Below, one piece after another: positions 659-59,024 of a stretch of DNA of 64,000 bases. The notes under the pieces are model-generated. The model was not told the DNA's origin. It searched no databases and saw only the letters and a program-made list of their open reading frames with translations. The stretch comes from Mytilus trossulus (Eukaryota): the NCBI RefSeq assembly GCF_036588685.1, contig NC_086382.1:54374001-54438000 (forward strand), in the 5' to 3' direction. The position numbers and the translations under genes were made by a program. Every line of letters starts with the position of its first letter. Position 1 is the stretch's first letter.

Positions 659-842
659 CCAGTATGTTTGGTACTTTGAATCCATGTGAAGCACATTTAG
701 CCTTCAACACTAGACAGTAATCTGGTTTGACTAGAGATACAGTTCTAAAGATGGCTGACACATAGTTTGGCATTCTACATGATGGATGTCTTACACTGGC
801 ATTGGACGTCATGTGTAGAGCTAAACCTTTCTTCAGGTTAAT
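616..842 (-). CDS. Dynein HC exon 36 (sensor I region)
   Basis: HMTSN...MPNYVSAIFRTVSLVKPD...SHGF; donor GTAAGT at 610-615. Confidence 0.88.
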
Positions 843-42800: not shown

Positions 42801-45173
42801 TATGTCCCTCATAAATGATTTGTAATGGAAAAAATATTGCTGTAAAATCTACACATTATACAAATAGCACAATTATGGTATATTAGAATGAAATCTACTT
42901 CTATAAGTTAGAAAAACAATCACCTTGCTGGCTCATCAGGGAAAGCCACTCTCCTAGTAGAGAAAGTTAATATCAGTTTCAAGCGAGAAGATAAGAAAAT
43001 GATGCTGATCTTTAAATAAATTAAAGCTTTTGAAATACATTATATGGATGTAAAAGTACCCCATAAACAGAGATTATGAAGTATTTAAAAAAGTCTTCTT
43101 AATTATTAATCTCGAAACTTGAATGATTTACATTTCTGTTGTTAAATAGTCTCTCTTTAAGTGTAATGAATAGTTATATTTAAAATCAGATTGTTTTTCC
43201 TAATCAATAAGTTTTTAGTTAAAAGGTTTAATTAACTTCTGAACCTTACAAGAAAGATTATCGTGCAAAGTAACACTGATATGATTTTTTTTATTTACAG
43301 TTCAACAATAACAGTGAGATGCAAACAATTTTTATCAGACACCTTTTTCCAAGAAATATAGAATTATTGGCATTTATTGCATTGATAAGTAAATCAATAG
43401 TCAAATAATAATCTTAAAAACATGATTGGTGTCAAATCCAGATGAAGTGATGATTCAAAATGCAAAATTTTTACAATGATGTCTACATACCTTTCATCTG
43501 AGGTGTCATTTAAAATAGTTTCTATTGTGTTCATCCAATCAGTTACCAGTTCTTCATACTGACCAATCAGTTGTGTATCTAATGCTGCTTGTCTTTGCAT
43601 CTTAAAGTCATTCAAAATCACATTTTCTGGCTGCTTCAACATCTAATAAATATAACAGACATGGTTAAATTCTGTTATTTAAGTTTATGTTAATTTCATA
43701 TTGACTAATAAAGGTAGGTTATTTAACAAGATCTCATTCAAACGTTCACTCAGTTTGAGATATAAATTGCCATGTGTACCAAGTTCAAATGTTTACTAAT
43801 ATGAATAATTTGCTTTTAACCTCAAATAATACATGTACAATATAAATAGCTTTGTACTACATGTAGCTATAGCATTTCAAAATGTGAACTTGTTAAATCT
43901 GAAATTTGTTTATCAATGTCTGAACACCTAAAACCTTAGTATTAAGTTACTTAGGAAAATTTAAGATAATCATGTATGTTTATTTTTAAGTTTGCCACAT
44001 TTTACACACGTCCCAAGTCAAGAGTCTCTGGCCTTTGTTAGTCTGGTATGTTTTTCAATTTTTTTAATTCATTTAAATGTGATTTGGAGTTCAGTTTGGT
44101 GTCCATATTCACTGAACTAGGCTATTATCTGCTCTATTATCGGGTTGTTGTCTCTTTGACTACATATCCCCTATTTGATTTCCATTTTCAATTTATTTAT
44201 TCTCAATTTAGTTATTATTAATAATTTTTCCGATAATTGGTCCCTATTTCTGAAAGTAAATCTGCTATCTTTAGGTCAGTGTATAGTGCTGCTAACTTAT
44301 GGAACACAGTGACACACAAGAAATTGAGGTTGTTTTACTACATTTACATGTATAGTATAGATTTAAAATTTGTATGATAAAATAAGAATAATTGTCTTTT
44401 CACAGTAAAATATATTTATATGTACATTTTCATTACATACAGACCAAATGGACCAACTTTTGAGGTGTGAAAGTGCATTAGAAGTGAACAGACCTGATAC
44501 AAGGTAATTTTAGGAAAAACATTGTTTTTTGTCATACATGTAGGACAATTGTATGTGTGATGTGAAGATATATCTACTTTGAGAAGTCAATATTTAAGTG
44601 ATGTAAGTTTTTTAATCATGACAGTAATTCAATATAAATCATTTTTACCAATTGCTTTGAACTAGCCATGGATGCTGTTGACTCATTTAAAGCTGTAAGA
44701 AATTTATCCATACTATGAGTCAAGTTATTTTGGCTTTCGTTGTTGCATTCTCCCCATTCTTTCTGCGCTTTAATTAATGGTATGTAAACTTCTGATAATA
44801 ATGATGTAAGTGTTTCCATGGTATTATGCTTCAGTTCACCGCAGAAAATATCTCTTTCCATCCTTGTGGGATCAACATCTTTGTCGACTCTGTTCCTCAA
44901 GAAATACAACACATTCAACTGGTCCAAGTTGGCATCTTTCAGCGACGCAAGAGTGCCAGTCACATGTAAATGACTGGTTGCCAATTCTCCTTCAGGCAAT
45001 TTTTCACAGTAGAAAAACAATCTACATGGCCCCCCTGCTTTCAGAAATTTGTTTATTTTGTTAAGATTATTTTGTTCGGTCATAAAATCTTCAAGGAGAG
45101 TAGGGTTGTCATATCCACCTATTTTGAAACTTTCCTGGATCTTTCCGGCGATCCACCAATGTCGTTCGTCCAT
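616..45173 (-). CDS. Axonemal dynein heavy chain, outer-arm gamma type (DNAH5/DNAH8-like, divergent); 5' portion, 36 coding exons, continues beyond left edge
   Basis: Manually spliced GT-AG exons with consistent phases, 7154 nt in total. Motifs: GPLSELERW..EQLKS..AKSRLLKKW, ITDAMNDTKDKVKYL, RNAPPAAGAIHWSRQL (tail); [37 protein letters not shown] (linker); GPGGVGKT Walker A and WACFDE Walker B (AAA1). Confidence 0.93.
1181..1318 (-). CDS. Dynein HC exon 35 (Walker B)
   Basis: GCWACFDESQNL. Confidence 0.92.
1676..1774 (-). CDS. Dynein HC exon 34
   Basis: GLANLFGKFLMLVQCS...MGKIVQG. Confidence 0.9.
2179..2375 (-). CDS. Dynein HC exon 33 (AAA1 P-loop)
   Basis: LTPVTERCF...GPGGVGKTETVK. Confidence 0.95.
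2498..2770 (+). mobile_element. MITE with TTAA TSD (Kolobok-like)
   Basis: TIR GGTGGTACCYAACACT flanked by TTAA on both sides; copies at 17138-17404 and 41245-41517. Confidence 0.85.
4820..4928 (-). CDS. Dynein HC exon 32
   Basis: YLRDVLE...TDFEWRRSVRCYY. Confidence 0.9.
5498..5920 (+). repeat. High-copy interspersed repeat, family B (ends ...ggcaatcataccacatcttc-T tract)
   Basis: Related copies or fragments near 4175-4415, 37990-38130, 59075-59183 (-) and 62626-62905 (-). Confidence 0.75.
5971..6195 (-). CDS. Dynein HC exon 31
   Basis: YPAQVCKIGMLYFWT. Confidence 0.9.
6669..6803 (-). CDS. Dynein HC exon 30
   Basis: GVEVWLLGLSESM. Confidence 0.9.
7113..7244 (-). CDS. Dynein HC exon 29
   Basis: ...ATAISSSEGETIAL. 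Confidence 0.88.
8206..10059 (+). pseudogene. DIRS ORF1 (gag-like), about 617 codons, interrupted by two 1-nt frameshifts (near 9040 and 9537)
   Basis: Three ORF-track segments (8185-9105, 9102-9590, 9475-10059) join into one Pro/Ser-rich protein with a basic C-terminus, in the position expected for DIRS gag. Confidence 0.75.
9791..12178 (+). CDS. DIRS reverse transcriptase - RNase H - adenine-methyltransferase-like polyprotein
   Basis: YSRLFLVPKK, RPVIDL, LDLSDAYFHIP, LPFGLSTAP, YLDD; RNase H LFTDAS..HINVLEM..TDN..ADTLSR; MT-like IDLFA..YAFPP..PAWPKQSWF. The true start codon is uncertain. Confidence 0.93.
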   Translation: MVYPYSGFKRNSAKILLQSKLVYKLLMARGRLMLHLVLIVLLLRVVLLLLLRKGRITTANRRTNPITQEKAQVSLLVVLRVPRNLGLVPRFLPPRTLLTASPGENLQQVPQKSIPVGGRLSFFLNQWKKITSDCYVLSIIRGGLTLQFKNPPPLSAVPISLSHTQDPVKCQLLSVEVDTMLQKAAIEEVSILTLSPGFYSRLFLVPKKTRGMRPVIDLSILNKFLIIPHFKMETNRSIRASILPGMWTTSLDLSDAYFHIPISKTYRKYLRFVWNNKVFQFKALPFGLSTAPLAFTKIMQAAIAHLHSLSIQIHSYLDDSLLKEFCPIKLRVQTDLVINCFLSLGFLISWKKSEIIPSQDFVFLGEHFLTSVGLVLPPEEKFTKLCQKIHLFLTVQSVTARQFLQLLGLLNSLADVIPLGRLHIRPLQFYLHKLWIAASHEWEALIPITQPLFPHLQWWLVRENVMRGLCLSPQVPSLTLFTDASTLGWGAYLEGLTISGVWSPDLLEEHINVLEMKAVLFALNHFQMSLKNQSVILATDNTTVVAYLKNQGGTHSPSLYQIARDILLLCFQLQVHLVVRHIAGHLNILADTLSRSLAPVNTEWELLQVVFKAVTLHWGSPQIDLFATSLNHKLLTFVSPVPDPKSFAVDAMSLSWKGMFGYAFPPFRFLSPVLQKKAGENCKIIVIAPAWPKQSWFPDLLRLSCACPLVLPLRPDLLSQIKGKVLYQNPEKLHLHAWLLSGLASEREVFLKEQPSISQSLSETPLALSMMQNGQSSQIGVVSGKLILSKSLYNN
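11113..13095 (+). CDS. DIRS tyrosine recombinase (N-terminal part overlaps the RT/RNase H ORF)
   Basis: TIKGYRSAI, LALASGRRRSE (R), AKNQ (K), AHDVR (HxxR), AGFW, SHYL (Y). Confidence 0.93.
   Translation: MGSIDSNHSAFISTPSMVVSTGKCNEGPMSVPSSSQSNIIHRCLHPRLGSISGGAYNLGSLESRSFGRAYQCIGNESSSVCTESFPNVSKESVCHSGHGQHNSCSLSQESGRNSFTFSLSDSQRHSPSVFSTPGSSSGETYCGAPQYSSRHSIQISCSSKHGVGTTSSSFQSCDSSLGVTSDRSVCDQSQSQTSNICVSGSRSKIFCSRRNEPILERNVRVRLPSFQVSLPSTSEKSRGKLQDHSYCSSMAKTVLVSRPSAPIMCLSSSSTSETRPSVSNQGQGSLSKSRKTSSTRLASLRVSLRKRGFSEGATKHLTKSVRDSTSIVYDAKWSIFSDWCSEREIDPFQVTVQQLADFLVFLFESKGLCPSTIKGYRSAISRTIHISGGPDFGINEHISLLVRSFSLERPRQKTLVPKWDLGLVLSFLKLPPFEPAETIDLRFLSYKCCFLLALASGRRRSEIHAFSISDACLRFNRDKSSVTLLTDPAFLAKNQIPDKGAEPVVIPALPSDSISVLLCPVRILSIYLERTCSLRSVSNSRLFIPIKKGISDLSVKTISTWICKCISLAYGSSKAELLNSFNVKAHDVRGISTSWALFNSASLEEVLSAGFWRNENSFISHYLQSMATFAESLYSLGPIVSAQRLNFPPVSSVTGDSALR
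13104..13201 (+). repeat. DIRS internal complementary region (ICR)
   Basis: Reverse complement of the left terminus joined through AAAA (13140-13143) to the reverse complement of the right terminal extension. Confidence 0.93.
16051..16258 (-). CDS. Dynein HC exon 28 (start of linker insertion)
   Basis: SLFSSISDVKLEE followed by low-complexity sequence; cag/GTAAGT. Confidence 0.85.
16546..16748 (-). CDS. Dynein HC exon 27
   Basis: [29 protein letters not shown]. Confidence 0.95.
17138..17404 (-). mobile_element. MITE, same family as 2498-2770, inverted
   Basis: Reverse-complement similarity; ends GGTGGTACC...GGTACCATC-TTAA. Confidence 0.82.
17542..17634 (-). CDS. Dynein HC exon 26
   Basis: [20 protein letters not shown]. 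Confidence 0.93.
18098..18458 (-). CDS. Dynein HC exon 25
   Basis: [15 protein letters not shown] (DHC_N2 linker). Confidence 0.95.
19076..19436 (+). repeat. High-copy interspersed repeat, family A (aaaattgagaatggaaatggggaatgtgtc...)
   Basis: Near-identical to 55030-55435; inverted copy at 41551-41961; fragments near 5017-5140, 18713-18770 and 44006-44195. Confidence 0.85.
19579..19688 (-). CDS. Dynein HC exon 24
   Basis: EIRNRHWSRVM. Confidence 0.92.
21062..21270. mobile_element. MITE with TA flanks (Tc1/mariner-like)
   Basis: TA-CTGTAAATTCAGAAATTATTG...CAATAATTTCTGATTTACAG-TA. Confidence 0.75.
21347..21478 (-). CDS. Dynein HC exon 23
   Basis: CLALPSKLKDKDAYNDLK...PLL. Confidence 0.92.
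21827..22153 (-). CDS. Dynein HC exon 22
   Basis: GPMVPGIPPSEAVSRL...LWADVDLE. Confidence 0.93.
22189..22335. repeat. 29-bp tandem repeat, 5 copies
   Basis: Unit aataaagcaattgtaaggtatattcattg. Confidence 0.95.
22695..22851 (-). CDS. Dynein HC exon 21
   Basis: EVEEVDQLRDKWQEL. Confidence 0.9.
23355..23823 (-). CDS. Dynein HC exon 20
   Basis: YDFLWKDD...LPIETMYAKL. Confidence 0.92.
23930..24411. mobile_element. MITE (Kolobok-like), TIR AGGAGTAGGTCCGGT
   Basis: 15-bp TIR; flanks TGAA and TTAG (degenerate TTAA). Confidence 0.78.
24561..24665 (-). CDS. Dynein HC exon 19
   Basis: VTWVERD...FHDRITSDAEV. Confidence 0.85.
25049..25161 (-). CDS. Dynein HC exon 18
   Basis: FEIEVGFNIPVIAVQPTLDTAQTAIN. 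Confidence 0.88.
25559..25841 (-). CDS. Dynein HC exon 17 (Ser/Thr-rich insertion)
   Basis: FYKEQVYEAVLTATKRSL...SPRRTSRAAS... Confidence 0.85.
26241..26355 (-). CDS. Dynein HC exon 16
   Basis: LEHHNPKAKK...FISNLI; tag/GTATGT. Confidence 0.8.
27244..27517. mobile_element. Non-autonomous DNA element with a 5' hairpin and asymmetric inverted repeats (family uncertain)
   Basis: Imperfect hairpin of about 100 bp at 27248-27346; TTATCGCTATTTT (27349) and AAAATAGCGATAA (27505-27517). Confidence 0.6.
28179..28304 (-). CDS. Dynein HC exon 15
   Basis: PPHEFRDVMLDRV...LLATRK; phase 0-0. Confidence 0.82.
28650..28804 (-). CDS. Dynein HC exon 14
   Basis: DAFLHQIHSA...AITRPW. Confidence 0.85.
28988..29247 (-). 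CDS. Dynein HC exon 13
   Basis: VLELIHEAKWL...LQPGLTTLAWNSMNI. Confidence 0.92.
29685..29989 (-). CDS. Dynein HC exon 12
   Basis: PQMVRNAPPAAGAIHWSRQLLKRIEDPM. Confidence 0.93.
30456..30576 (-). CDS. Dynein HC exon 11
   Basis: ...IFNWYETDLEEVQRIYETHK. Confidence 0.88.
30886..31347 (+). mobile_element. Helentron-associated (HINE/pearl-like) element
   Basis: Two internal tandem units of about 157 bp, a GACR microsatellite, and a terminal palindrome ATGCCCCGCTAC..GTAGGTGGGGCAT; inverted relative near 56620-56854. Confidence 0.78.
31392..31528 (-). CDS. Dynein HC exon 10
   Basis: DRDRFDMYYNNF...GLDIIT; cag/GTAATG. Confidence 0.85.
32692..32825 (-). CDS. Dynein HC exon 9
   Basis: KYYPEDEEDDGPG...MLDVESK; tag/GTAAGA. 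Confidence 0.82.
33218..33835. mobile_element. MITE with TTAA TSD (Kolobok-like)
   Basis: TTAA-GGGCATATGATACAGTT...AACTGTATCGTACGCCC-TTAA. Confidence 0.87.
34070..34291 (-). CDS. Dynein HC exon 8 (acidic insertion)
   Basis: REAAEQEEAMNAENS...EQLAVL; cag/GTATGT. Confidence 0.8.
34789..34910 (-). CDS. Dynein HC exon 7
   Basis: MVTLTAGMPRLRKDDF...; phase 2 to 1 is needed to keep the frame. Confidence 0.75.
35094..36842. mobile_element. Non-autonomous DNA transposon with CAGGG termini, 5-bp TSD CAGTG and a nested foldback element
   Basis: TIR CAGGGTTCAAAATAAG / CTTATTTCGACCCCTG; CAGTG at 35089-35093 and 36843-36847. Confidence 0.78.
35855..36010. repeat. 156-bp near-perfect palindrome
   Basis: Arms pair around the gtcCTTCGGac apex. 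Confidence 0.92.
37073..37270 (-). CDS. Dynein HC exon 6
   Basis: ...MDSFCTRIKQLIDVINTLSQYN; cag/GTAAGT. Confidence 0.85.
37663..37865 (-). CDS. Dynein HC exon 5
   Basis: GGIQRSK...RLRACLSLQGFYRD; phase 0 to 2. Confidence 0.82.
38388..38769 (-). CDS. Dynein HC exon 4
   Basis: ITDAMNDTKDKVKYL...KITNQLV; cag/GTACAG. Confidence 0.92.
39221..39394 (-). CDS. Dynein HC exon 3 (DHC_N1 start)
   Basis: FMDPNAGPLSELERW...KKWKVVDA; tag/GTAAGT. Confidence 0.92.
41245..41517 (+). mobile_element. MITE, same family as 2498-2770
   Basis: TTAA-GGTGGTACC...GGTACCACC-TTAA. Confidence 0.87.
41551..41961 (-). repeat. Interspersed repeat family A, inverted copy
   Basis: Reverse complement of 19076-19436 and 55030-55435. 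Confidence 0.82.
43491..43642 (-). CDS. Dynein HC exon 2
   Basis: tag/GTATGT; MLKQPEN...YEELVTDWMNTIE. Confidence 0.85.
44649..45173 (-). CDS. Dynein HC coding exon 1 (MDERHWWIAGKIQESF...SSKQL)
   Basis: ATG in aaaATGg context; GT donor, phase 0; an upstream acceptor at 45201-45202 implies a 5' UTR exon. Confidence 0.8.
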
Positions 45174-45302
45174 TTTAATGCAAAATGGTACCAAACCTAT
45201 CTACAACATATAACTATTTCAAAATTAAAAGTGGCCTTTCCATCTACGGTTTCTGTAGCTTGTTTCTAAAGTTATGGAACGCTGAACTTCTTTCATATGT
45301 AG

Positions 45303-45326
45303 GCCGCCATCATTGTTGTTGGTAAC
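45303..45326 (-). promoter_or_regulatory. Putative dynein promoter elements: YY1-type GCCGCCAT and RFX X-box-like GTTGTTGGTAAC
   Basis: 130-150 bp upstream of the dynein ATG; RFX sites are typical of motile-cilia genes; only one half-site is perfect. Confidence 0.45.
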
Positions 45327-45520
45327 CAAAAGTGCCCGTATGAAGCACCTGTTCAAACGTTGTTGTCTCCCCTTAAAATATTCATTATTATATTTTTAAT
45401 CTCTGTAATGATTATATTGGAAGGCTATTTTATTGAATTTCATAAGATTTTCAAGAAATGAAGGAATTTATAAAGAAAAAGGTCAGAATACTTGAGCTTT
45501 TTTCTTAACCTTTTAAACCT

Positions 45521-45577
45521 ACTTTCACTTTCGGAAATTCGAAATTCTATGTTGTACTTTCACTTTGATCTGAAGGT
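45521..45577 (+). promoter_or_regulatory. IRF-E/ISRE-like motifs and a candidate 5' UTR exon donor for the BTB genes
   Basis: ACTTTCACTTTC at 45521-45532 (reverse complement GAAAGTGAAAGT), adjacent GGAAATTC, second ACTTTCACTTTG at 45556-45567, donor AAG|GTAAGA at 45576. Confidence 0.45.
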
Positions 45578-45989
45578 AAGATGTTTAAATACCAAAAAAA
45601 AAACTCCGAACCTTAACATAACTGTCATATCTCTTTGAGTTATTTATAAAACCGTCAATTCTGATGAAATAGTGAAGGAATCTCGTTTTTTTTAAACCAC
45701 GAGAAAGAAAGACCAACAGGTACATATATTTGCCGGCAAATAAGAAAATCTCTGGTTAGATATTTTTAGGGAATATTTTATGTTTTCTTCTTATTCAGTT
45801 TCAGAAAACCATCAACATACTGATGTTTACTTTCCGGGGCATGCCTGTTATTTTTTTCTCTCAAATTTATGTATTTATAAATATAGTTAAACATGTTAAG
45901 CATATAAGATTGTCAATTTTTGTGTATTCCATATTAGTTTTTTGTATATTTGTTGATTTATGATTATTATTATGTATGCCATACTGTGA

Positions 45990-47190
45990 ATCCTATCCGT
46001 AATGTATTTACAATAAAATCAGGGAAATTAGTAACGCAAAAGATACAGAACAACTGTAGAAAGACATTGAAGCGTTAGAAAAGTGTGTGTGTGTGGGGGG
46101 GGGGGGGGCATGGATGATGTGATATTCCATCCATCAAAGTGATCCATCAAAGTGCAATATTGTCCTCATACCACCAAAGAACAAAGAACCTATACAATAC
46201 CCATACACTCTACATGGACACATAATCGAAACAGTAGATAGTGCCAAGTACTTGGGAGTTTCAACATGTTCAATATACAACAATCTCTCATGGAACAAAC
46301 ATATCCAGAGTGGTATAGCAAAGGGTAACCGAACACTTGGGTTTGTTAAACGAAACCAAAAAGAATGTTCAAGGAAAGTATATAAGGCTGCTGGCTATAC
46401 AACTCTCGTACGATCTGTCATAGAGTATGCTTCTACAGAGGCGGATCCAGAAATTTTCATAAGTGGGGCCCCACTGACTGACCTCAGAGGGGGCCGCTCC
46501 AGTCACGCTTCAGTGATTCCCTCTATAAGCAACCAATTTTTCCCCAAAAAAGGGGGGGCGGACCCACTACCCCCCCCCCCCTTAAATCCGCCTCTGTTCC
46601 ACTATATGGGACCCAACTAACCAAGCAAGCACCAACACACTAGAACTCATACAGAAGAGAGCTGTTACTGAAAGTTGTCTATAATGACTATACACATCAC
46701 GCACACCAGGGTGTGTCACTACAATGTTAGAAGACATAAAATGGGACACATTGCAGACAAGACTCCATGACAACAGGGTATGCATGCTCTATCGTATCCA
46801 GAATGAGCTGATATACATCAACAAGAGTACTTACCTCAAAGGTGGCGACAGTAGAACTCGTGGAGGACACACGTTTTACCAACAGATCATGATCACCAGT
46901 GATGTCTACAGGAACTCCTTATTTCCAAGAACAATCATGGAACGGAATACATCATCTGATAGGGTTGCTGAAGCGGGACTCAGTTGAAGATTTCCGCGCA
47001 GGGCTACAGACAACACATTAAAACAAGACTGAACGATTGTACATAATTTTAACCGTAACAACCTGATGTATAGTAAATACTGTATATAGCCTTAGGGGGG
47101 GGGGGCTAGATATGTAATGTCACCATGCGTAGTCCCGCAGAGTTTAAACGTTTCATCCAAGGAGCCCAACTCTAATATGGAAGAAGAAGA
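45990..47190 (+). mobile_element. 5'-truncated, decayed non-LTR retrotransposon (CR1/L2-group RT C-terminus)
   Basis: KYLGV..LSWNKHI..KGNRTLGFVKRN..YTTLVRS.IEYAS..WDP..FPRTI; ends in a GAAGAAGAAGA tail. Confidence 0.85.
46436..46596. mobile_element. MITE CAGAGGCGGAT...ATCCGCCTCTG with 5-bp TSD (TTCTA/TTCCA), inserted in the LINE
   Basis: Empty site in the duplicate near 52525 (gcttcta|ctatatggg). Confidence 0.87.
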
Positions 47191-47497
47191 TATATATTCT
47201 TTCTGATTTGAAAAGAAAATGGTGATTCAGAGGGTAGTGATGTGATATTGACCATGAAGATATTCAGTGATCATCCGTATATATCATTTCACTTTTAGTT
47301 GCAACCTTCTCAGTGAGGCTTGGTGACATACACATTCCTTTAATGATTTTTTTCTAATTAGTATGAATTGAAGTCGGACTGTCCTCTAGTAAGTTTCATA
47401 CTTTTAACAGTGAATGCAATCTTTGACAAACCAGTTACGTACTAAATTATATATATTTCTTTTATTTCAGGCTGAGTGCTGAGTTCCGAGAACTGGG

Positions 47498-49033
47498 ATG
47501 TCTTACTGTACATTCAGAGAAAAGCATTACCAGAGACAGATCTGTCTTAAAATATATAAAGCCCGTGAAGCCAGAAAGTATTGTGATGTTACTTTGCAGT
47601 CTGGCGTTGTAAAAGTCACCGCACATAAACTTATTCTGACATCTTTTTCAGATTTTTTTGAGACACTGTTTCAAGGTAATTCATTACAGGAACTTTTTAT
47701 AATAAGTGATATTTCTCCTGAAATACTAGAAACTATCGTACAATTTGCGTACAGTGGGGAAATAAAGATAACAGTGCACAATGTAATGGAATTATATGAA
47801 GCTGCCGTTCTTCTGAAAGCAGATGGTCTGAAAAAGGTAGCAGTTAATTTCATGAAAAGGCATGTGCATGTTGATTTTGACAACCTTGTCAAAATGTCAA
47901 CCTTTGCATGCACATTGAGTTTACTGCAACAACAGAAAGCAGTATGCTCATTTATTACGAAGAATTTTGAAGATGTTAAAAAGAAAGGACTTTTGAATTC
48001 GCTTTCAGTAGATCATTTGGAAACATTGCTGTCAAACACAAACTTCTCGGTTTTGATATTTGATATTCCCGCCGAAAACATAGAACTGGAGTTGCTGAAG
48101 GTTGTACTAGAATACATCTCAAACAAAGGTGGTGATCAAATCGAAAAACTTAACGTAGATTCACTTTTATGGACTATCAAATTTTCGGAAATTCCGTTCC
48201 ACGACTTAGTTGAAACATTAGAAAATTACCCTTCTGTATATGACAGTGATGCTATAAGAAATATTCTACTTTATATACAATACCCTAGAAACCAATCGAT
48301 AGATCAACTATTGCCAAAGAAGTGGTCTGAGGTCAGGAAATTTTCAGGGTACTGTAGAAATATGGAATACCATTATGATTATCATGGACATAATTGGACA
48401 AGGGATGTTGAATTTGTGGATGACCGTGCTTCAGAAATCAGAATGTTTGTCTCAAAATGTCTTTGCAGTACATTGGAGAAAAAGAAAGCTAGAACAAGGA
48501 TCAATAGAATTGTAGTTACTTGCAGAAGTGGTAAAGAACTGAGCGTCATACACGAAGACAGCAAGGAAAAGATATGCAACAAGAAATGTTCTGGTATAGA
48601 ACTATCAGAGGAGAGATTTGCATTACAACAGAATGAAGTTATTGTTAAAGTTGAGAACTTTTACAATACCACAGAAATGGGTCTGAGGTTTACTTCTAAC
48701 TATGGCAATGTATTCGGCCCGTATGGCTCGGATTTTCCCAAAGATACTGCTGGGATAAAAACCAATAAACCGGGAAGTGAGCGCGGATATTTTTACTCTT
48801 TCTGTGGAACTGTATTGACAAAAACGTATTACCCTAATTGTCTCTGGGTAGGAGTTAACTTGCGAAGTCGGTCACCATCACCAGAAGAATCACATTGCAG
48901 AGATGAGCATGACAGTTGGAGTAATGATAGTTATGAAGATCATAGCTACAGTGACCATGATAGTATAGACAAATATATAAATCTGGAAGAAGAGTTTTAT
49001 GATTCTCCAGGGTACTACCAAGAAAGTGATTAA
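47498..49033 (+). CDS. BTB/POZ-BACK protein with C-terminal jacalin-like domain and acidic tail, copy 1 (511 aa, intronless CDS)
   Basis: BTB CDVTL..AHKLIL..SDFFETLF..IVQFAYSGEI; BACK-like FITKNFEDV..LSVDHLETLLS..ELELLKVVLEYI; jacalin-like FALQQNEVIVKV..GLRFTSNYGNVFGPYG; splice acceptor at 47469-47470. Confidence 0.88.
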   Translation: MSYCTFREKHYQRQICLKIYKAREARKYCDVTLQSGVVKVTAHKLILTSFSDFFETLFQGNSLQELFIISDISPEILETIVQFAYSGEIKITVHNVMELYEAAVLLKADGLKKVAVNFMKRHVHVDFDNLVKMSTFACTLSLLQQQKAVCSFITKNFEDVKKKGLLNSLSVDHLETLLSNTNFSVLIFDIPAENIELELLKVVLEYISNKGGDQIEKLNVDSLLWTIKFSEIPFHDLVETLENYPSVYDSDAIRNILLYIQYPRNQSIDQLLPKKWSEVRKFSGYCRNMEYHYDYHGHNWTRDVEFVDDRASEIRMFVSKCLCSTLEKKKARTRINRIVVTCRSGKELSVIHEDSKEKICNKKCSGIELSEERFALQQNEVIVKVENFYNTTEMGLRFTSNYGNVFGPYGSDFPKDTAGIKTNKPGSERGYFYSFCGTVLTKTYYPNCLWVGVNLRSRSPSPEESHCRDEHDSWSNDSYEDHSYSDHDSIDKYINLEEEFYDSPGYYQESD

Positions 49034-52000
49034 CACTCTGTTAGCCCCAATCCAACTTAAACTTATAATTTAAAACATAATGCGATATTACTAAAAAGGC
49101 ACATACAAATTAATTTGTCCAATCTGGGTTTCTTAAACGTTCTTCAATATACATGTAGACAATGTCAATACGAAAACTCATAAAAACATAAAATGGATCA
49201 TCGAAATCCGAGGATAAATCCGTGTACAAAGCTGAATACAGATGTATGTCCAGAATGGATTCATATTTATATATATATATTTTTATATATATATCTCGGA
49301 CCGAAGCTGTGGAGGAATATTTGGCAAGTTGTGCATTTCTTCTTATCCTGAACTTTTTATAAACTGAAGTAATAACTGCCGACGATGCTCGTTGGTGAAT
49401 TTTATTTTCAGTACCTCTCGTACAAATATTCGTTCTGAACGTGCATGAAATATTTGCCACTGAACTTTAGGCAACCAACAAGCATACAATCAATCTTGCA
49501 TAAAATTCGTTAATGTGTTAACAATAAAAGTAATGACATCATCAATATATTTTTAAATATTCATTAAAAAAAAATTGACTACACTTTTTAGTATTTATTG
49601 AAATCCCAATTTATTTAAAATATTTTTATATTTTAATTAGATTGTTGAAATCCATGTGTAGGGGTTTGGATGAAGATTTACAGAATAGAGAATCAATGAC
49701 AAAAGAAGCATGTTATGTGGACTGTTGTTTTGTCTTATTTGTGGTGGTGTTGTTGTCTGTTTTTCTACGACTTGTGTTTTATTGTCTCTCTGTCTCTTGG
49801 TATCTTCATCACGATTATAAAAGGAAACACTGGGCCTTCTTTGTCTTTTTTGCTAGCTATGTTAAAAATCTTATTTTTTTTGTGTACTTGTATGTTTACA
49901 AAACTCATTGATAACAAAAATACCCACATGACGATTTGGGTTTCTAAGCTTTCTAAACCCTCTTAATTTGGGTGAGTTAGGTGTTTCTGAATGGTCAGCA
50001 GTTTTTGCTCCACAAGTGGCACCCGTGGCGGTGCTCGTGATAAGTGTTTGATGACAAGTTACATTCAATAATGTAACGATCGAGTTAAAAATGACGAGTA
50101 CACATGACAAATGAAACGTTTTCGTGGTCATCTGGGACACAAATATTCTAAACTGATGGCCAACCAAATCATGATTGCGCCCGTAAAACGTTTCGAAGGG
50201 ATACATCTGTACCATTGGGAACCTATAGTATAAATGAACCATCCATTATGAAAGTTATAATAGGATTAACAATGCCTATAAAACGTAAAGAAATGAAAAA
50301 AAATCGTAATTAAAGGTCAATTAGTTTTATTAGGATATCGGCAAAGTCGATTTATTTGTATATTTGTCTGCCTTATCATTTTCTCATAAAACTTTTATAT
50401 ATATTTGAGAAAAATGTATATAAATCGATAAAAAAAACCTTGATATTCGGCATTTATTGTAATAAACATAATCCAACTCACATAATCCGATTTCCCGGGT
50501 GTTTCTGTTTTCTCATTTCTTACAATATTTTAATTCGGTATACACTTTATAAGATAAGTGGCGAATCTAGATGACGTATAGGTTGCACGCCCCGACCCCA
50601 CCTTTGGTTGCCAAAACTATATTGATTCCCGTATTTAACGATTTTGTAAAGCAAAAAATAATCAAAATATTGTTCAACTCGCTACGCTCGACGGTATGTA
50701 AAAGTTGTTCGAAATACGCCCACTTTGAAATCAACTGAATCCGTCTGTCCGTATATATTGTCAAAATATATTGACCAACGTCAGTGTACGATCATCATAA
50801 CACAATGGCTACAGTACAGACTCGTTTTTTTTAATAATGTTAACAAAATAATTATTATGGAATTTCATCGATGACCTGAGACTATTATACTAATTTGTAC
50901 ATAGCAGTATAGTTACAATTAGTGATAAATAAATTTTATTTTAATGCATGGTAGTTGTAATCCTACATTCATTTTCTATGTCGATTATGCATGCATATAC
51001 ATTTGTCTTATTATCAACGTTTATCCTTAAGAAGATTTATTTTTAACGATGGTAGAAAGATTACATACATGGAATGATTAGATTACTTATAAAGGTGTCT
51101 ATTCTTTTGTGCGAGAAAATCACATATCAATTGTGTGTTTCGATTTGTAAGACCGTAAACTTTAATTTCAAGTTTAAACATGTTCAACATATTTCCCCAT
51201 AACTCATATAGAAAACGCATATTTAGAGAGCTTTAATCTCAATATGCTATTAAAAAAGTTCGGGATGCAAAGTAAAATTAAAATATTTGTGTTCTATAAG
51301 AGTAGGAATTTGCTTATTATTTATTTGAATCTGAGACTCATATAAATAATAAGCCGCTGTCCGGTGAACGAACTTGTTTTCGAACGACCCACAAAACTCC
51401 TTTTGAACGCTGAAGTTAAATAATCAATTATAATGTAATGCGATTATGATTTTTTTTCTTTGACCAAACCGGGTTATGCATTTTGAAATCTATGACGAAA
51501 CCGGGTTGTATACATTGACGAAACCGGCCAGTTCCATTTTGACATGATCCATTTCTTTCGTTCCATACACAGAGTTACAATTATTGAGATGCTCATAATA
51601 ACTAAATTTGCAATCTCCGTGTCAATATCTATCTTCCCGTACCTTTCTTTCCGTACAATGTGAACAATTTAACGAGCAATTAAACAATTTCGAGGCAAGG
51701 TTCACTCAATTCGTCATTTTGACATGCATTTTGACTTATTTCTCCGTTAATATAGAACGGTTGTAGAAAATATTGCATCTCACAATAGAAAATAGTTGTA
51801 TATGTATACATATTCTTCGATATCATTAGGAAAATAAGAAAATAAGGAGAAACCTATCTTTCTTCTGTCTATTGATGTTCCGTCATTGTAACGGATGTTA
51901 GATACCATCGAGTCCGATCAAATTCTGCCGGTGTGGTTTAGACACAGTGAAATATTCTAAACTGATGGCCAATCAAATCATAATTGCGCCCGTAAAACGT

Positions 52001-52164
52001 TTCAAAGGGATATATCTGTACCATTGGGAACCTATAGTATAAATGAACCATTCATTATGAAAGTTATAATAGGATTAACAATGCCTATAAAATGACGTAT
52101 TGCATATGCAGACACTGCAACTGCTGATGCACATAAATGGAAAGTTGACAATTAATATCGTATA

Positions 52165-52320
52165 TTGACTTACATCTAGAAATATACAATGAGGGTTGGC
52201 AGAGAAAAAACAACTTTAAAACAAAAGAGATAATATCATCTACCCAATTGTTAACCTTCCTTTTCTATGAAGCAATATTCCAGTAGCATCTGCACTTGGA
52301 GTAAATATCTCCAAATGTGT
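52165..52320 (+). mobile_element. Decayed Penelope-like RT fragment
   Basis: DLHLEI..KRDN..PIVNLPFL*SNIP.ASA.GV.IS; longer duplicate near 56075-56400. Confidence 0.6.
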
Positions 52321-52690
52321 ATGGACTCATACTCAAACCAGTAGATAGTGCCAAGTACTTAGGAGTTTAAATATACACCAATCTATCATGGAACAAACAT
52401 ATCCAGAGTGTTATAGCAAAGGGTAACCGAACACTTTGGTTTGTTAAACGAAACCTAAATGAATGTTCAAGGAAAGTAGAGGCTTCTGGCTATACTACTC
52501 TCGTGCGACATGTCATATAGTATGCTTCTACTATATGGGACCCAACTAACCAAGCAAGTATCAACACACTAGAACTCATACAGAGGAGAGCTGCTAGAGT
52601 TGTCTATAATGACTACACATCACGCACATCATGGTGTGTCACTACAATGTTAGAAGACCTAAAATGGGACACATTACAGACAAGACGAGG
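52321..52690 (+). mobile_element. LINE fragment, duplicate of about 46214-46762 without the MITE
   Basis: Direct similarity to the upstream LINE copy. Confidence 0.82.
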
Positions 52691-52866
52691 CTTGATGAAA
52701 TACACATTTCTTTTATGATTTTAATCTAAATAGGATTAATTGAAGTCGGACTGTCCCTTAGTAAGTTCATAATTTTAACAGTCAATGCAATCGTTGACAA
52801 ACCAATTACTAAGTTATATATATTTCTTTTATTTTTCAGGCTGAGTGCTGAGTGCTGAGAACTGGG

Positions 52867-54417
52867 ATGTCTTACTGTACATTCAGAGAAAAGCATTACC
52901 AAAGACAGATCTGTCTTAAAATATACGAAGCCCGTGAAGCCAGAAAGTATTGTGATGTTACTTTGCAGTCTGGCGTTGTAAAAGTCACCGCACATAAACT
53001 TATTCTGACATCTTTTTCAGATTTTTTTGAGACACTGTTTCAAGGTAATTCATTACAGGAACTTTTTATAATAAGTGATATTTCTCCTGAAATACTAGAA
53101 ACTATCGTACAATTTGCGTACAGTGGGGAAATAAAGATAACAGTGCACAATGTAATGGAATTATATGAAGCTGCCGTTCTTCTGAAAGCAGATGGTCTGA
53201 AAAAGGTAGCAGTTAATTTCATGAAAAGGCATGTGCATGTTGATTTTGACAACCTTGTCAAAATGTCAACCTTTGCATGCACATTGAGTTTACTGCAACA
53301 ACAGAAAGCAGTATGCTCATTTATTACGAAGAATTTTGAAGATGTTAAAAAGAAAGGACTTTTGAATTCGCTTTCAGTAGATCATTTGGAAACATTGCTG
53401 TCAAACACCAACTTCTCGGTTTTGATATTTGATATTCCCGCCGAAAACATAGAACTGGAGTTGCTGAAGGTTGTACTAGAATACATCTCAAACAAAAGTG
53501 GTGATCAAATCGAAAAACTTAACGTAGATTCACTTTTATGGACTATCAAATTTTCGGAAATTCCGTTCCACGACTTAGTTGAAACATTAGAAAATTACCC
53601 TTCTGTATATGACAGTGATGCTATAAGAAATATTCTACTTTATATACAATACCCTAGAAATCAATCGATAGATCAACTATTGCCAAAGAAGTGGTCTGAG
53701 GTCAGGAAATTTTCAGGGTACTGTAGAAATATGGAATACCATTATGATTATCATGGACATAATTGGACAAGGGATATTGAATTTGTGGATGACCGTGCTT
53801 CAGAAATCAGAATGTTTGTCTCGAAATGTCTCTGCAGTACATTGGAGAAAAAGAAAGCTAGAACAAGGATCAATAGAATTGTAGTTACTTGCAGAAGTGG
53901 TAAAGAACTGAGCGTCATACACGAATACAGCAAGGAAAAGCCGTGCGAAAAGAAATGTTCTGGTATAGAACTATCAGAGGAGAGATTTGCATTACAACGG
54001 AACGAGGTTATTGTTAAAGTTGAGAGCTTTTACAATACTACAGAAATGGGTCTGAGGTTTAATTCTAATTTTGGCAACGTATTCGGCCCGTATGGCTCGG
54101 ATTTTCCCGAAGATACTGCTGGGATAAAAACCAATAAATCTGGAAGCGAGCGCGGATATTTTTACTCTTTCTGTGGAACTGTATTGACAAACACGTATTA
54201 CCCTAATTGTCTCTGGGTTGGAGTAAACTTACGAAGTCGGTCACCATCACCAGAGGAATCTGATGACAGAGATGAACATGAAAGAGATGAAAAAGACAGT
54301 TGGAGTAATGATAGTTATGAAGATCATAGCTACAGTGACCATGATAGTATAGACAAATATATAAATCTGGAAGAAGAGTTTTATGATTCTCCAGGGTACT
54401 TCCAAGACAGCGATTAA
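52867..54417 (+). CDS. BTB/POZ-BACK-jacalin-like protein, copy 2 (516 aa, intronless CDS)
   Basis: Near-identical paralog of 47498-49033; acceptor at 52838-52839; ATG at 52867. Confidence 0.88.
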   Translation: MSYCTFREKHYQRQICLKIYEAREARKYCDVTLQSGVVKVTAHKLILTSFSDFFETLFQGNSLQELFIISDISPEILETIVQFAYSGEIKITVHNVMELYEAAVLLKADGLKKVAVNFMKRHVHVDFDNLVKMSTFACTLSLLQQQKAVCSFITKNFEDVKKKGLLNSLSVDHLETLLSNTNFSVLIFDIPAENIELELLKVVLEYISNKSGDQIEKLNVDSLLWTIKFSEIPFHDLVETLENYPSVYDSDAIRNILLYIQYPRNQSIDQLLPKKWSEVRKFSGYCRNMEYHYDYHGHNWTRDIEFVDDRASEIRMFVSKCLCSTLEKKKARTRINRIVVTCRSGKELSVIHEYSKEKPCEKKCSGIELSEERFALQRNEVIVKVESFYNTTEMGLRFNSNFGNVFGPYGSDFPEDTAGIKTNKSGSERGYFYSFCGTVLTNTYYPNCLWVGVNLRSRSPSPEESDDRDEHERDEKDSWSNDSYEDHSYSDHDSIDKYINLEEEFYDSPGYFQDSD

Positions 54418-55029
54418 CATTCTGTTAGCCCCAATCCAACTTTAACTTATAATTTTAAACAGAATGCGGTATTACTAAAAAGGCACATACAAATTAATTT
54501 GTCCAGTCTGGGTTTCTTAAACGTTCTTCAATATACATGTAAACAGTGTCAATACAGAAACCGATAAAAACATAAAATGGACCATCGAAATCCGAGGATA
54601 AATCCTGGTATAAAGCTGAATACAGATGTATGTCCAGAATGGATTCATATATATATATATCTCGGACCGAAGCTGTGGAGGAATATTCGGCAAGTTGTGC
54701 ATTTCTTCTTATCCTGAACTTTTTTTAAACTGAAGTAAGAACTGCCGACGATGCTGCCGACGATACTCGTTGGTGAATTTTGTTTTCAGTATCTCTTGTA
54801 CAAAAATTCGTTCTGAACTTGCATGAAATTTCTGCCACTGAACTTTAAGCAATCAACAAGCATACAATCAAACTTGCATAAAATTCGTTACTCTTAACAA
54901 TAAAAGTAATGACATCATCAATATATTTTTTTAATATTCATTAAAAAAAATTTACTACACTATTTAGTACTTATTGAAATCCCAATCTAATTAAAATATT
55001 TCAGTAAGCTATATTTTTATATTTTAATT

Positions 55030-55435
55030 AAAATTGAGAATGGAAATGGGGAATGTGTCAAAGAGACAAACAACCCGACCAAAATAAAAAAAACAACAGC
55101 AGAAGGTCACCAACAGGTCTTCAATGTAGCGAGAAATTCCCGCACCCGGAGGCGTCCTTCAGCTGGCCCCTAAACAAATATATACCAGTTCAGTGATAAT
55201 GAACGCCATACTAATTTCCAAATTGTACACAAGAAACTAAAATTAAAATAATACAAGACTAACAAAGGTCAGAGGCTCCTGACTTGGGACAGGCGCAAAA
55301 ATGCGGCGGGGTTAAACATGTTTGTGAGATCTCAACCCTCCCCCTATACCTCTAACCAATGTAGAAAAGTAAACGCATAACAATACGCACATTAAAATTC
55401 AGTTCAAGAGAAGTCCGAGTCTGATGTCAGAAGAT
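55030..55435 (+). mobile_element. Interspersed repeat family A, present only in the second duplicate
   Basis: The paralogous site at 49631-49645 is empty (ttttaatt|agattg). Confidence 0.87.
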
Positions 55436-57371
55436 AGATTGCTGAAATCCATGTTTAAGGGTCTGAATGAAGATTTACAGAATAGAGAATCAATGACTAA
55501 AGAAGCATGTTATGTGGAATGTTCTTTGTCTTATCTTTAACAGTGGATGGTGTTGTTGTCTGCTTTTCTACGACTAGTGTTTTATTGCCTCTTGGTATCT
55601 TCTTCACGATCCGAAAAGGGAACACTGGGCCTTTTTTGTCTTTTTTGCTAGCTATGTTAAAAATCTTATTTTTTTGTGTACTTGTATGTTTACAAGCTAT
55701 CTAAACCCTCTTAATTTGGGTGAAATTAGGTGTTTCTGAAGGGTCAGCAGTTTTTTCTCCACAAGTGGTACCCATGACGGTGCTCGTGGTAAGTAAAATT
55801 TGATCAGGAGCCGCATTTAATAATGTAACAATCGAGTAAAAGACGACGAGTACACATGACAAATGATAAGTTTTCGTGGTCATCTGGGACACAAATATTC
55901 TAAACTGAGGGTCTACAAAATCATGATTGCGCCCGTAAAACAATTTCGAAGGGATATATATGTACCATTGGGAACCTATAGTATAAATGAACCATCCATT
56001 ATGGAAGTTATAATAGGATTAACAATGCCTATAAAATGACGTATTTCATATTTTGACAATTAATATCGTATATTGACTTACATCTAGAAATATACAATGA
56101 GGGTTGGCAGAGAAAAAAACCCCCATTAAAACAAAAGAGATAATATCATTTACCCAATTGTGAACCTTCCTTTTCTATGAAGCAACATTCCAGTAGCGTC
56201 TGCACTTGGAGTAAATACCTCCAAATGTGTATTAGAGCTCGCGGGTTTTTTTTTATCACGATTTTTTTATTAAGGGTTGATGCTGACAATAGAGTTGTAA
56301 AACTAAAAAGTTAAAGTCACCCCTTTGAGAATTTTACAGATGTAATAATTTACTTAATTGTGACCTCACCGAATGCATACACATATGTCCACGTGAAGCC
56401 CGATTGACTAGTGCTTCCGGAGGAAAACAGATTTTCGCCACGGCACTAGTTTTTGCTGTAGTTCGTAGTGCTCCGTCTTTATGTTTTCTATGTAAAACCA
56501 TGCAGAGACATTATATAGACATGTACACCTATGTGTATATTTGTCTCTCTGTGGACTTTATCTTTTCTTCGTTTTTCGCCCGTTTATCACCACTAAAGAA
56601 TTTTGAATGTCACGTGTGTACCTTGCGTTCTTTCGTTCCTTCGTCCGTCCGTCTGTCCCGCTTCATGTTAAAGTTTTTGGTCAAGGTAGTTTTTGAAGTC
56701 CAATCAACTTGGAACTAAGTACACATGTTCACTATGCTATGAACTTTCTAATTTAATGCCCCCCCCCCCCCCCCCCCCCCCAATTTCACGGTCCACTGAA
56801 CATAGAAATGATAGTGCGAGTGTGTCATCCGTGTACTATGGACACATTCTTGTTAATTGTGTGAATGTTTCATGATGTTCCAGAGGTTAGAACCCTCTTT
56901 TAAAATGACTGGATTCGCGTCTAAGGTTAGCCAAAGACAATAACATTATCATCAGCCGAACACCAACATGACCATGATGACCAAACACCTATACACGTTT
57001 TGAAAAGAGTTTATATGGTACGGTATTAACATAGTATATGTAACGTTATAATCCTCTATAATGCGAACTTTCGAAAGGTAATGCGAACATTTAAATCGAT
57101 ATTTATATATACACTTTGTACATATATGATATGTTATATTATATATATATATATATTTAGATTATATTTTTAAATGTCAAGAACAGAAAATTACCAAGGT
57201 CGATTTTGTTCAACTTCCTGTGTAAACATAACTATTTTTTCTTAGTTTTAGTTGATCTTAGAATGGATTGTTCATGATTTGTCAACATTGGCTTTGTGCA
57301 GAGATGCTATATTTGATAATTGTGACGTAATTGCATGCGTTTGGTATCGTTGTGACGCTATAGATTTCAAA

Positions 57372-59024
57372 ATGAACAGAAGCCAACATTCAAATACCAG
57401 AGCAGTTCAATCTCTCATACAACTTGTTCAAACTTTTGTTGATACAAAAGTTGTGAAGTCAGAAGTAGACAAGTTGCCGAAAATTGGAATTGAATCTTTC
57501 CACGATGAAAATAATCTGGATGTCCTTCACCATGCCATCATCGCCAACAACATTGAAGCTGTGACAGTTTTATTTTTCAAAGGATATTTTTTGCCACCAC
57601 ACGAGTATTATTCAATATCTTACATGCATCTTGCTGCCAAACTTGGACACAGAACTATACTTGGGTTACTTTTACAGGACAGACCTCATGACAATAAAGC
57701 TACTAACTTCAAGTATCAGTCGGCCAGTCAAAAACACTACATAAAACCAACGGACGGCGATGAACGAACCGAAGTTACTCCACTTGATGTTGCTGGCAAA
57801 TGTGGCCATATTAGATGTGTGAAATTAATACTTGACCATTGTTTAGGTCGATATCACGGCCGAAATAAGTTCTCTGGCAATGACGCTCATATCAACATGG
57901 CGTGTCAACTTGATTCGCCTTCAGCTTTGAGGCTTTTGTTGTCAGAGTCCCCTATAGACGATGACGTAAAAAGTGCTGTTGGCGCAGCTTTAAAATTAGC
58001 CAAACCAGAATGTTTGGATATCTTATTACGCTTACATCCAGATTTGAGATCACTGTTTGGAGGAATGAACCTATTCCATGTTCTATATTCCTATAGTTTC
58101 CTTTTTGACAAGAACTGGGTTGAAGCACTACCAACTGTGACCACTGTGTTGATACGCCATGGACACAGTGTTGCTTCAAACATACCCTTCAGAACATATC
58201 CATTGTACAGTTTGTTGTGCTTGTATGTGAAATGTTATGATATGCCAGAAAAACTTCCTTATATTATCGCTTGTGTTGTACTGCTGCTGAACGCTGGTGC
58301 TAATCCGAATTTCGACGAAATTGAATTTGAAATTGCTCAGGAAAATCTTAATGTTCAAACTGCATTTGGGAGATTAGCATACTCTACTGGATTGCATTGC
58401 TTCTATTCGAACATATGTAGTTTAAACCTTAATTTTGAGGAGGGAATAGAAATCAAAACGATTGTTGGAATGTTGCAACATTGTACAGAGATCCTTCTAC
58501 GTCACGGATCAAATTTGCAGCAAATAGGACGAGTTAACGAGGACGGGTCTTTGATGGGGACTGCATTACACTCTTTTTGTGATATGTCCATTTTGATTGG
58601 ATTAGACACAAAGACTCTATCTTTATTGTTAAAATATGGTGCAGATCCTGAAAAAGAATGCAATGGAATCTATCCGATTAGTTTAATATTCGAACAATTT
58701 GTTTGTTGTACCGTAGAGAATCTCACTATTAAAGACCTGGATATATTTTTGAATATTTTAAATATGATGTCGTATAAATGTGTCAATGAAATAATGAACG
58801 ACACGATCGAGTATAAAACTGAAGATGCATCTGAACAAATGAAATTTCAAAACAAAATTATTAGATACATGGCAGATATACTAAATGATTGGACATTGAA
58901 GAAGGAGTGCCAATATCTTATATTGAAAAACTGCAAGCGAAAGATGGCAAAAGTTCTCAAACTGCCCATTCCGATGCCACTGAAGACTGAAATTCTATCC
59001 GTAACGCTAAGCTTGGTACCTTGA
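57372..59024 (+). CDS. Ankyrin-repeat and SOCS-box protein (ASB-like), 550 aa, intronless CDS
   Basis: Ankyrin motifs VLHHAI, YMHLAAKLGH, TPLDVAGKCGHIRCVKLIL, LLLNAGANPN, LLLKYGADP; SOCS box TLKKECQYLI..LKLPIPMPLKTEI; ATG in aaaATG context at 57372. Confidence 0.88.
   Translation: MNRSQHSNTRAVQSLIQLVQTFVDTKVVKSEVDKLPKIGIESFHDENNLDVLHHAIIANNIEAVTVLFFKGYFLPPHEYYSISYMHLAAKLGHRTILGLLLQDRPHDNKATNFKYQSASQKHYIKPTDGDERTEVTPLDVAGKCGHIRCVKLILDHCLGRYHGRNKFSGNDAHINMACQLDSPSALRLLLSESPIDDDVKSAVGAALKLAKPECLDILLRLHPDLRSLFGGMNLFHVLYSYSFLFDKNWVEALPTVTTVLIRHGHSVASNIPFRTYPLYSLLCLYVKCYDMPEKLPYIIACVVLLLNAGANPNFDEIEFEIAQENLNVQTAFGRLAYSTGLHCFYSNICSLNLNFEEGIEIKTIVGMLQHCTEILLRHGSNLQQIGRVNEDGSLMGTALHSFCDMSILIGLDTKTLSLLLKYGADPEKECNGIYPISLIFEQFVCCTVENLTIKDLDIFLNILNMMSYKCVNEIMNDTIEYKTEDASEQMKFQNKIIRYMADILNDWTLKKECQYLILKNCKRKMAKVLKLPIPMPLKTEILSVTLSLVP

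Follow-up and report, generated by a model that had tools for sequence, protein, structure and literature searches.

BTB-BACK proteins with a predicted jacalin-related domain in place of Kelch repeats in the mussel Mytilus trossulus and other invertebrates

Adaptors of Cullin-3 (Cul3) are sorted according to the domain that binds the substrate, which may be Kelch, MATH, PHR or one of a few others. Here we analysed 64,000 nucleotides (nt) of DNA from Mytilus trossulus (RefSeq assembly GCF_036588685.1, contig NC_086382.1, positions 54,374,001 to 54,438,000 of the forward strand; hereafter, the window) and describe two tandem genes whose products, we are confident, both combine a BTB-BACK half with a jacalin-related lectin (JRL) domain. 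An earlier note on this DNA had proposed that the two proteins are glycan-sensing Cul3 adaptors. We find that the architecture is shared by a widespread invertebrate family, and that the residues with which JRLs hold sugars are missing from the mussel pair.

Domain make-up of the two proteins

The window is AT-rich (GC content of about 0.27-0.43) and contains no N. Both open reading frames (ORFs) lie where the earlier note had placed them, and the motifs that it had quoted (EERFALQQNEVIVKVE, GLRFTSNYGNVFGPYG and GYFYSFCG) are present in the translation. The coding part of both copies is intronless. The ORF of copy 2 was listed from a GTG at 52852; from the ATG at 52867, the protein starts with MSYCTF, as in copy 1. 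The genes, their domains and the surrounding duplication are as follows (aa, amino acids).

47498-49033, + strand: coding sequence of copy 1, 511 aa (ORF list and translation)
47558-47860, + strand: BTB/POZ domain of copy 1, aa 21-121 (Pfam PF00651)
47888-48214, + strand: BACK domain of copy 1, weak, aa 131-239 (Pfam PF07707)
48335-48868, + strand: jacalin-related domain of copy 1 with its lead-in, aa 280-457 (Pfam and profile homology)
48869-49030, + strand: acidic, Ser/Tyr-rich tail of copy 1, aa 458-511 (residue composition)
52867-54417, + strand: coding sequence of copy 2, 516 aa counted from the ATG (ORF list and translation)
53704-54237, + strand: jacalin-related domain of copy 2 (Pfam and alignment)
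46214-50283, strand not assigned: tandem duplication unit, first copy (blastn)
52321-56036, strand not assigned: tandem duplication unit, second copy (blastn)

Domains were called with Pfam cut-offs of 20.5 bits for BTB, 20.9 for BACK and 22 for Jacalin. The BTB domain is unambiguous, with 75.5 bits in copy 1 (E = 4.6e-21) and 75.4 bits in copy 2; the BACK domain is borderline. Against solved structures, the N-terminal 279 aa best match the BTB-BACK chain of KLHL3 (4hxi, which we take to be a KLHL3-Cul3 complex; E = 2.7e-12 over aa 21-257), followed in order by KEAP1, KLHL22, KBTBD4, KBTBD2 and KLHL11. The BTB-BACK N terminus reported in the earlier note is thus supported, with a borderline BACK part.

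The BTB alpha3-beta4 loop of copy 1 contains a hydrophobic-x-Glu stretch in the form L-Q-E: L63-Q64-E65 lies opposite M-S-E of KLHL3 in the 4hxi alignment. In KLHL11, Phe130-Ser131-Glu132 of this loop insert into Cul3 and hydrogen-bond with it, and the 3-box consists of the first two helices of BACK, as described in PMC3597819. Through KLHL3, L-Q-E would be the counterpart of this Cul3-contact stretch, and a role as a Cul3 adaptor is predicted as probable.

Beyond the BTB-BACK half, no Kelch family was matched in Pfam at E values of up to 1, either in the two copies or in six paralogs of the same layout, and we therefore reject a Kelch propeller as the C-terminal domain. Neither a signal peptide nor a membrane stretch was seen in the proteins, the highest Kyte-Doolittle mean over 19 residues being 1.25, within the BTB domain. 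The absence of Kelch repeats and of a signal peptide agrees with the earlier note. The tail of copy 1 contains 17 D/E against 3 K/R in 54 aa, and an acidic tail (at least 25% D/E, and D/E more than twice K/R) is present in 18 of the 27 family members that have a tail of at least 20 aa.

Homology to jacalin was recovered through the paralogs, which we located by a genome-wide scan (541 contigs, 1.30 Gb in total; the window lies on the contig labelled C10). The six that we examined (L003-L008, with open frames of 480-535 aa) share 25-28% identity with copy 1 and score 33.5-41.2 bits against Pfam Jacalin, all of them passing the cut-off. In copy 1 itself, the sub-threshold Pfam Jacalin (PF01419) match spans model positions 19-123 of 136 at aa 334-433. 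When used alone, the C-terminal 178 aa of copy 1 matched the counterparts in two paralogs with E values of 3e-14 and 3e-10.

We built a C-terminal profile (A2) from eight C-terminal domains. Of its 39 PDB matches at E values of up to 1, 38 are jacalin-type lectins or jacalin-domain proteins, led by the Parkia lectin 1zgr (1.6e-13) and griffithsin (3.6e-8), and then artocarpin, jacalin, the Maclura agglutinin and others; the sole non-jacalin match, 5y6p, is the weakest (E = 0.51). A feature search of the ESM Atlas with aa 285-460 returned jacalin clusters at 0.86-0.88, which according to the guide to the tool serves only as a lead. On the basis of this profile homology, we assign the C-terminal domain to the jacalin-related family as a divergent member, and the resemblance that the earlier note had pointed out is upheld by the PDB matches and by the paralogs that pass the Pfam cut-off.

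An invertebrate family and its sugar-contact residues

BTB-BACK-JRL proteins form a widespread family of invertebrates (cnidarians, molluscs, annelids and crustaceans) that is present in databases under automatic names. In a whole-library search with the A2 profile, where each match represents one cluster at 50% identity, E-value thresholds of 1e-3, 1e-10 and 1e-30 gave 514, 145 and 13 proteins, respectively. After this search, we scanned a set of 153 proteins with our own profiles of both halves: the JRL part was found in 151, the BTB-BACK part in 54 and both parts in 53, always in the order BTB-BACK and then JRL. Tandem-JRL proteins, or short fragments of this kind of protein, account for many of the remaining entries.

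Named entries were obtained for 12 of the 30 clusters that were looked up. Molluscs are represented by Pecten maximus ('kelch-like protein 28'), Lymnaea stagnalis and, in addition to these clusters, Mytilus, annelids by two clusters of the leech Helobdella robusta and crustaceans by the krill Meganyctiphanes norvegica. The cnidarian members are from Actinia tenebrosa ('actin-binding protein IPP-like'), Xenia sp., Sanderia malayensis and Hydractinia symbiolongicarpus ('kelch-like protein 8'), and a fifth, from Actinostola, was found by searching with the JRL region of the Actinia protein. For the proteins of Actinia and Actinostola and for two others, the precomputed Pfam annotation lists BACK, BTB and Jacalin. 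No deuterostome is represented among the 13 named proteins (those of the 12 clusters and the ortholog from Mytilus coruscus). The names 'kelch-like protein 8', 'kelch-like protein 28' and 'KLHL1_4_5' (the M. coruscus ortholog) are misnomers, because Kelch repeats are absent and the C-terminal domain is jacalin-related.

Given this distribution across molluscs, a leech, a krill and five cnidarians, the architecture is not a local peculiarity. The statement of the earlier note that no characterised example was known agrees with a text search of titles and abstract starts in one literature collection, which found no description of a BTB-jacalin fusion; the public databases already contain the architecture under automatic names. 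One apparent mention of 'BTB', in PMC8878817, is a typing error for 'BPBT'.

Word-indexed searches were less productive. With the whole protein or a ten-row alignment they returned, among the matches listed, Mytilus orthologs and one BTB fragment, BTB proteins having taken up the 8000 candidate slots, and with the JRL region of the Actinia member only four close, sea-anemone-like relatives. With so few relatives obtained in this way, the range of the family rests on the whole-library profile search.

Within the genome that contains the window, the JRL profile has at least 13 open matches, in addition to broken pieces. In a quick tree, the clade of the window copies sits on a long branch (1.19) among the paralogs of this genome, and no other JRL domain of the family is as divergent as that of this clade. 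Twelve reference JRL domains, a small set that was hand-picked by motif pattern, fall on one side of a branch with a support of 99 (Shimodaira-Hasegawa-like approximate likelihood ratio test, SH-aLRT).

Broken JRL pieces with internal stop codons occur at C6:77002173-77006620 and C10:21304653-21304946; those on C6 adjoin an intact paralog at C6:76993987.

JRLs hold sugars with two loops, the GG loop and, at the C-terminal end, a binding loop (Gly149...Asp153 in Pteria PPL3); the aspartate of the latter (GxxxD) defines the sugar sites, according to PMC6769917. In griffithsin, mannose is contacted by a single aspartate at each of three nearly identical sites: Asp30, Asp70 and Asp112 (PMC5086628). 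We used MAFFT to align 45 BTB-family JRL domains with the 12 reference domains, which were taken from non-BTB matches of the same search. The references were picked with a pattern that demanded both the GG loop and the final GxxxD, and the 12/12 for the C-terminal loop below simply reflects this choice; the pattern did not cover the first and middle aspartates.

C-terminal binding-loop Asp: reference 12/12; BTB family 1/45; window clade, deletion (MAFFT)
First-site Asp: reference 12/12; BTB family 0/45 (G 31, S 6, N 4, A 3, V 1); window clade, N (MAFFT)
Middle-site Asp: reference 6/12; BTB family 30/45; window clade, M, with N for the paired Gly (MAFFT)

Alignment to the reference profile with hmmalign gave similar counts of aspartate (C-terminal 3/45, first 1/45 and middle 30/45), with the window clade unaligned at the C-terminal site and showing S at the first and M at the middle site. 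In MAFFT, G occupies the four glycine columns of the reference GG loop in 3, 6, 13 and 2 of the 45 family domains, and the sequences of the window clade do not extend to these columns; in hmmalign, the clade is unaligned there. In 30 of the 45 family members, a GxxxD stretch (SGWMID) is followed by GPYGGxGG, and together these align with SGD(Y/F)ID...GPYGGSGG of griffithsin. We take the middle site to be that of griffithsin Asp70, judging by its position in chain 2gty_A. GPYGGxGG, which most family members keep, reads GPYGSDFP in the window copies.

These alignments show that the window copies retain no canonical sugar contact, and that the mainstream of the family keeps at most one griffithsin-like site. 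Despite the lost sugar residues, the JRL part is under purifying selection; it is 86% identical to that of the M. coruscus ortholog, compared with 88% for the BTB-BACK part. We consider canonical glycan binding by the window copies to be quite improbable. With the GG loop, the GxxxD loop and both other aspartates lost in both alignments, the glycan-sensing that the earlier note had suggested for these copies finds no support in their sequence.

Duplication, transcription and neighbouring elements

Copies 1 and 2 are recent tandem duplicates. The duplication unit is about 4 kb in size, with a core (47315-49625, corresponding to 52687-55001) at 93.6% identity and flanks at 87-91% identity (blastn). 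The two proteins are 96% identical (494/516 aligned). Their codons differ by 21 synonymous and 22 non-synonymous changes, which gives a ratio of non-synonymous to synonymous rates (dN/dS) of 0.26, with about 0.27 for the JRL part. The closest named protein, M. coruscus 'KLHL1_4_5', is of equal length and is 87% identical over its full length. Together with the open frames and the spliced contigs described below, these values argue against ORFs that arose by chance.

Synonymous differences between the copies number 4 over 177 sites in the BTB-BACK half and 12.5 over 108 sites in the JRL part; the frequency in the former, about five times lower, suggests that the 5' half has recently undergone gene conversion. 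A 143-nt repeat is present in three copies, at 50141-50283, 51950-52092 (97% identical to the first copy) and 55894-56036 (74%); it closes each duplication unit and occurs once more between the units.

Transcription was examined by placing contigs of four public runs, which were taken as RNA by guess, on positions 45500-51400. They define the following gene structure (UTR, untranslated region).

44472-44503, + strand: 3' end of the first, 5'UTR exon, which is at least about 148 nt long (match of an X1 contig)
44504-47470, + strand: 5'UTR intron, GT...AG, 2967 nt (contigs and splice signals)
47471-49636, + strand, 3' end approximate: exon 2 of copy 1, with 27 nt of 5'UTR, the entire coding sequence and about 600 nt of 3'UTR

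The X1 contig has 148 letters upstream of 47469, of which the 30 shown equal 44472-44501 exactly, a unique match in the window. At the donor, the genome reads ...ACAAG|GTAATT at 44503/44504 (GT at 44504-44505) and at the acceptor ...TTTCAG|GCTGAG at 47470/47471, with a polypyrimidine tract and the AG at 47469-47470. In three runs from three studies (X1, X2 and X20), a contig starts exactly at 47469, two bases before exon 2, because AG is common to both sides of the junction. An AATAAA lies at 49523-49528 in the 3'UTR of copy 1. Contig cover is confined to the gene of copy 1 (47469 to about 49636; last bin 49440-49636) and to repeats: it is zero in 46682-47272 and 49637-50030 and almost zero in 47273-47468. 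Copy 2 has the same acceptor context, tttttcag|GCTGAGTGC, at about 52839/52840.

We conclude that the BTB-JRL gene is spliced and transcribed. A contig that lacks a GT-AG intron is expected of RNA, so the runs fit RNA, although this had only been guessed. The contigs derive from other individuals or labels; the junction contig agrees with copy 1 at 47485 and 47487.

Contig depth in the 3'UTR at 49243-49636 is 95-285 in X1 and X20, compared with 15-30 across the coding part, and could reflect a repeat or another transcript that overlaps the 3' end. The stretch 46288-46681, which is part of the duplication unit (second copy within 52321-52686), is a very high-copy repeat, with word depths that range from about 480 to 8500 in the contigs of each of the four runs; an ORF without any Pfam match, at 46252-46620, overlaps this repeat.

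Exon-like ORFs of a dynein heavy chain are present on the - strand at 44616-45194, 38274-38756 (Pfam DHC_N1, 5e-14) and 23351-23812. The first of these lies inside the 5'UTR intron of copy 1; as the first exon of copy 1 ends at 44503, just past this dynein piece and on the opposite strand, the two genes overlap head to head. Directly downstream of copy 2, an intronless 590-aa ORF (57252-59024, + strand) encodes ankyrin repeats (Ank_2, 9.5e-11). A retroelement with long overlapping ORFs occupies 8185-13095 (+ strand): its 795-aa ORF matches RVT_1 (1e-17) and, weakly, RNase H, its 660-aa ORF has no Pfam match, and its layout is presumably DIRS-like.

Predicted function and comparison with known adaptors

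We favour, with moderate confidence, the reading that the mussel proteins belong to an old invertebrate BTB-BACK family in which a beta-prism and an acidic tail replace the Kelch propeller, and that they act as Cul3 adaptors whose ligand would be a protein or otherwise non-canonical. The BTB domain would dimerise, the alpha3-beta4 loop (L-Q-E) and the first BACK helices would bind Cul3, and the C-terminal beta-prism would offer a substrate for ubiquitylation. Given that the sugar contacts are lost, in these copies and in their Mytilus orthologs, and the domain is nonetheless under purifying selection, such a ligand seems more likely than a mannose- or galactose-type glycan.

Several observations weigh against this reading. 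The Pfam Jacalin scores of the two copies (21.0 bits in copy 1 and 19.0 bits in copy 2) are under the cut-off, and the BACK score of copy 1 is weak (18.9 bits, compared with 21.4 bits in copy 2). Compared with the 12 motif-bearing JRL domains, the window clade reaches an hhalign probability of 70% (E = 3.9e-5 over 68 columns), and 17-21 bits with hmmsearch. The beta-prism fold of the C-terminal domain is itself a prediction from homology, and the loss of canonical residues is compatible with a new sugar site that may lie elsewhere on the fold. Some BTB-BACK proteins work without Cul3. Finally, when 16 variant letters of the contigs were compared with the two copies, 9 proved to be those of copy 2 and 7 matched neither copy; with copy-1, copy-2 and private letters mixed in this way, the transcript is not assignable to either copy.

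The first alternative is that BTB-BACK serves here as an oligomerisation or scaffold module outside any Cul3 ligase, as happens in some BTB proteins, with the beta-prism and tail tethering a partner without ubiquitylation. The weak BACK domain of copy 1 is in keeping with this, as is the label 'actin-binding protein IPP-like' on relatives, although that label is automatic. However, the best solved match of this half is KLHL3 (4hxi, aa 21-257), with L-Q-E opposite M-S-E, and BTB-BACK followed by a C-terminal substrate domain is the usual, standard layout of Cul3 adaptors, as set out in PMC3597819. We therefore regard a pure scaffold as unlikely.

A broader scenario, to which we give somewhat less weight, is that the family as a whole comprises ancient Cul3 adaptors, shared by cnidarians and protostomes, that would read cytosol-exposed glycans through the single griffithsin-like site (SGWMID with GPYGGxGG) retained by most members. 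The mussel pair would then be a fast-evolving offshoot in which the beta-prism has turned from sugar to another ligand, possibly a protein of a pathogen or of the mussel itself.

Still more doubtful is the proposal of the earlier note for the pair itself, that of a cytosolic, lectin-type Cul3 adaptor that marks glycans on ruptured vacuoles or microbes with ubiquitin. It draws on the homology of the C-terminal domain to jacalin-type lectins, the lack of a signal peptide and the griffithsin-like SGWMID and GPYGGxGG of 30 of the 45 family members. Set against these are the aspartate columns of the window clade, which read N, M and a deletion in MAFFT, or S, M and unaligned in hmmalign, together with the missing GG loop and the rarity of the C-terminal binding-loop aspartate across the family (1/45 in MAFFT and 3/45 in hmmalign). 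Last, we reject the reading of one or both copies as decaying duplicates without a function of their own as very improbable: the duplication is recent (core DNA identity of 93.6%), the JRL domain has diverged further than any other of the family (branch of 1.19 in the quick tree) and the contigs are not assignable to a single copy, but both frames are intact, dN/dS between the copies is 0.26, the M. coruscus ortholog has the same length at 87% identity and spliced transcripts exist.

Read as predicted Cul3 adaptors, the mussel proteins are closest to the KLHL and KBTBD proteins (KLHL3, KLHL11 and KEAP1). They share with these the N-terminal half (a BTB and a borderline BACK domain, with KLHL3, KEAP1, KLHL22 and KBTBD4 as best solved matches), the hydrophobic-x-Glu of the BTB domain and a general layout in which the adaptor half precedes an all-beta domain for the substrate; they differ in having no Kelch repeats and, in their place, a predicted jacalin-related beta-prism of around 150 aa and an acidic tail. 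BTB-BACK-PHR proteins (BTBD1/2/3/6) likewise have a beta-rich C-terminal domain that is not Kelch, as described in bioRxiv 10.1101/575910. Their C-terminal domain belongs to another fold family, and the mussel copies have no PHR match.

Mammals have sugar-binding F-box proteins, the FBXO2 family. F-box/jacalin proteins are found in Arabidopsis and soybean, and F-box/Nictaba proteins have been proposed to target glycoproteins (PMC5485960). The F-box lectin proteins also fuse a cullin-ligase adaptor module to a lectin-type domain, but they are from plants or vertebrates and use Skp1-Cul1 through the F-box rather than BTB-Cul3; the fusions are independent, and the mussel window copies are without sugar-contact residues. 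With JRLs proper (jacalin, griffithsin, ZG16p and Pteria PPL2-4), the mussel domain shares a core of an E-x-I-x-x-V strand and F-x-T-N-x-G-x-x-x-G-P-Y-G. JRLs proper are small and many are secreted, with a GG loop and a GxxxD loop (PMC6769917), whereas the mussel domain is fused, cytosolic by prediction and without either loop.

What is new is the combination of a known adaptor chassis with a substrate domain undescribed for it in the literature searched, already present in databases but misnamed. The jacalin-type beta-prism as a substrate domain of predicted Cul3 adaptors defines a family of at least 145 clusters at 50% identity. Should sugar binding hold for its mainstream members, these would be the first ligases to read glycans through Cul3, a counterpart of the sugar-binding F-box ligases, and would provide a handle on how exposed glycans are detected in the cytosol of invertebrates that lack the vertebrate systems. 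The mussel pair, with a predicted lectin fold that has lost its sugar residues and is kept under selection, would be a clean case of the reuse of a lectin scaffold.

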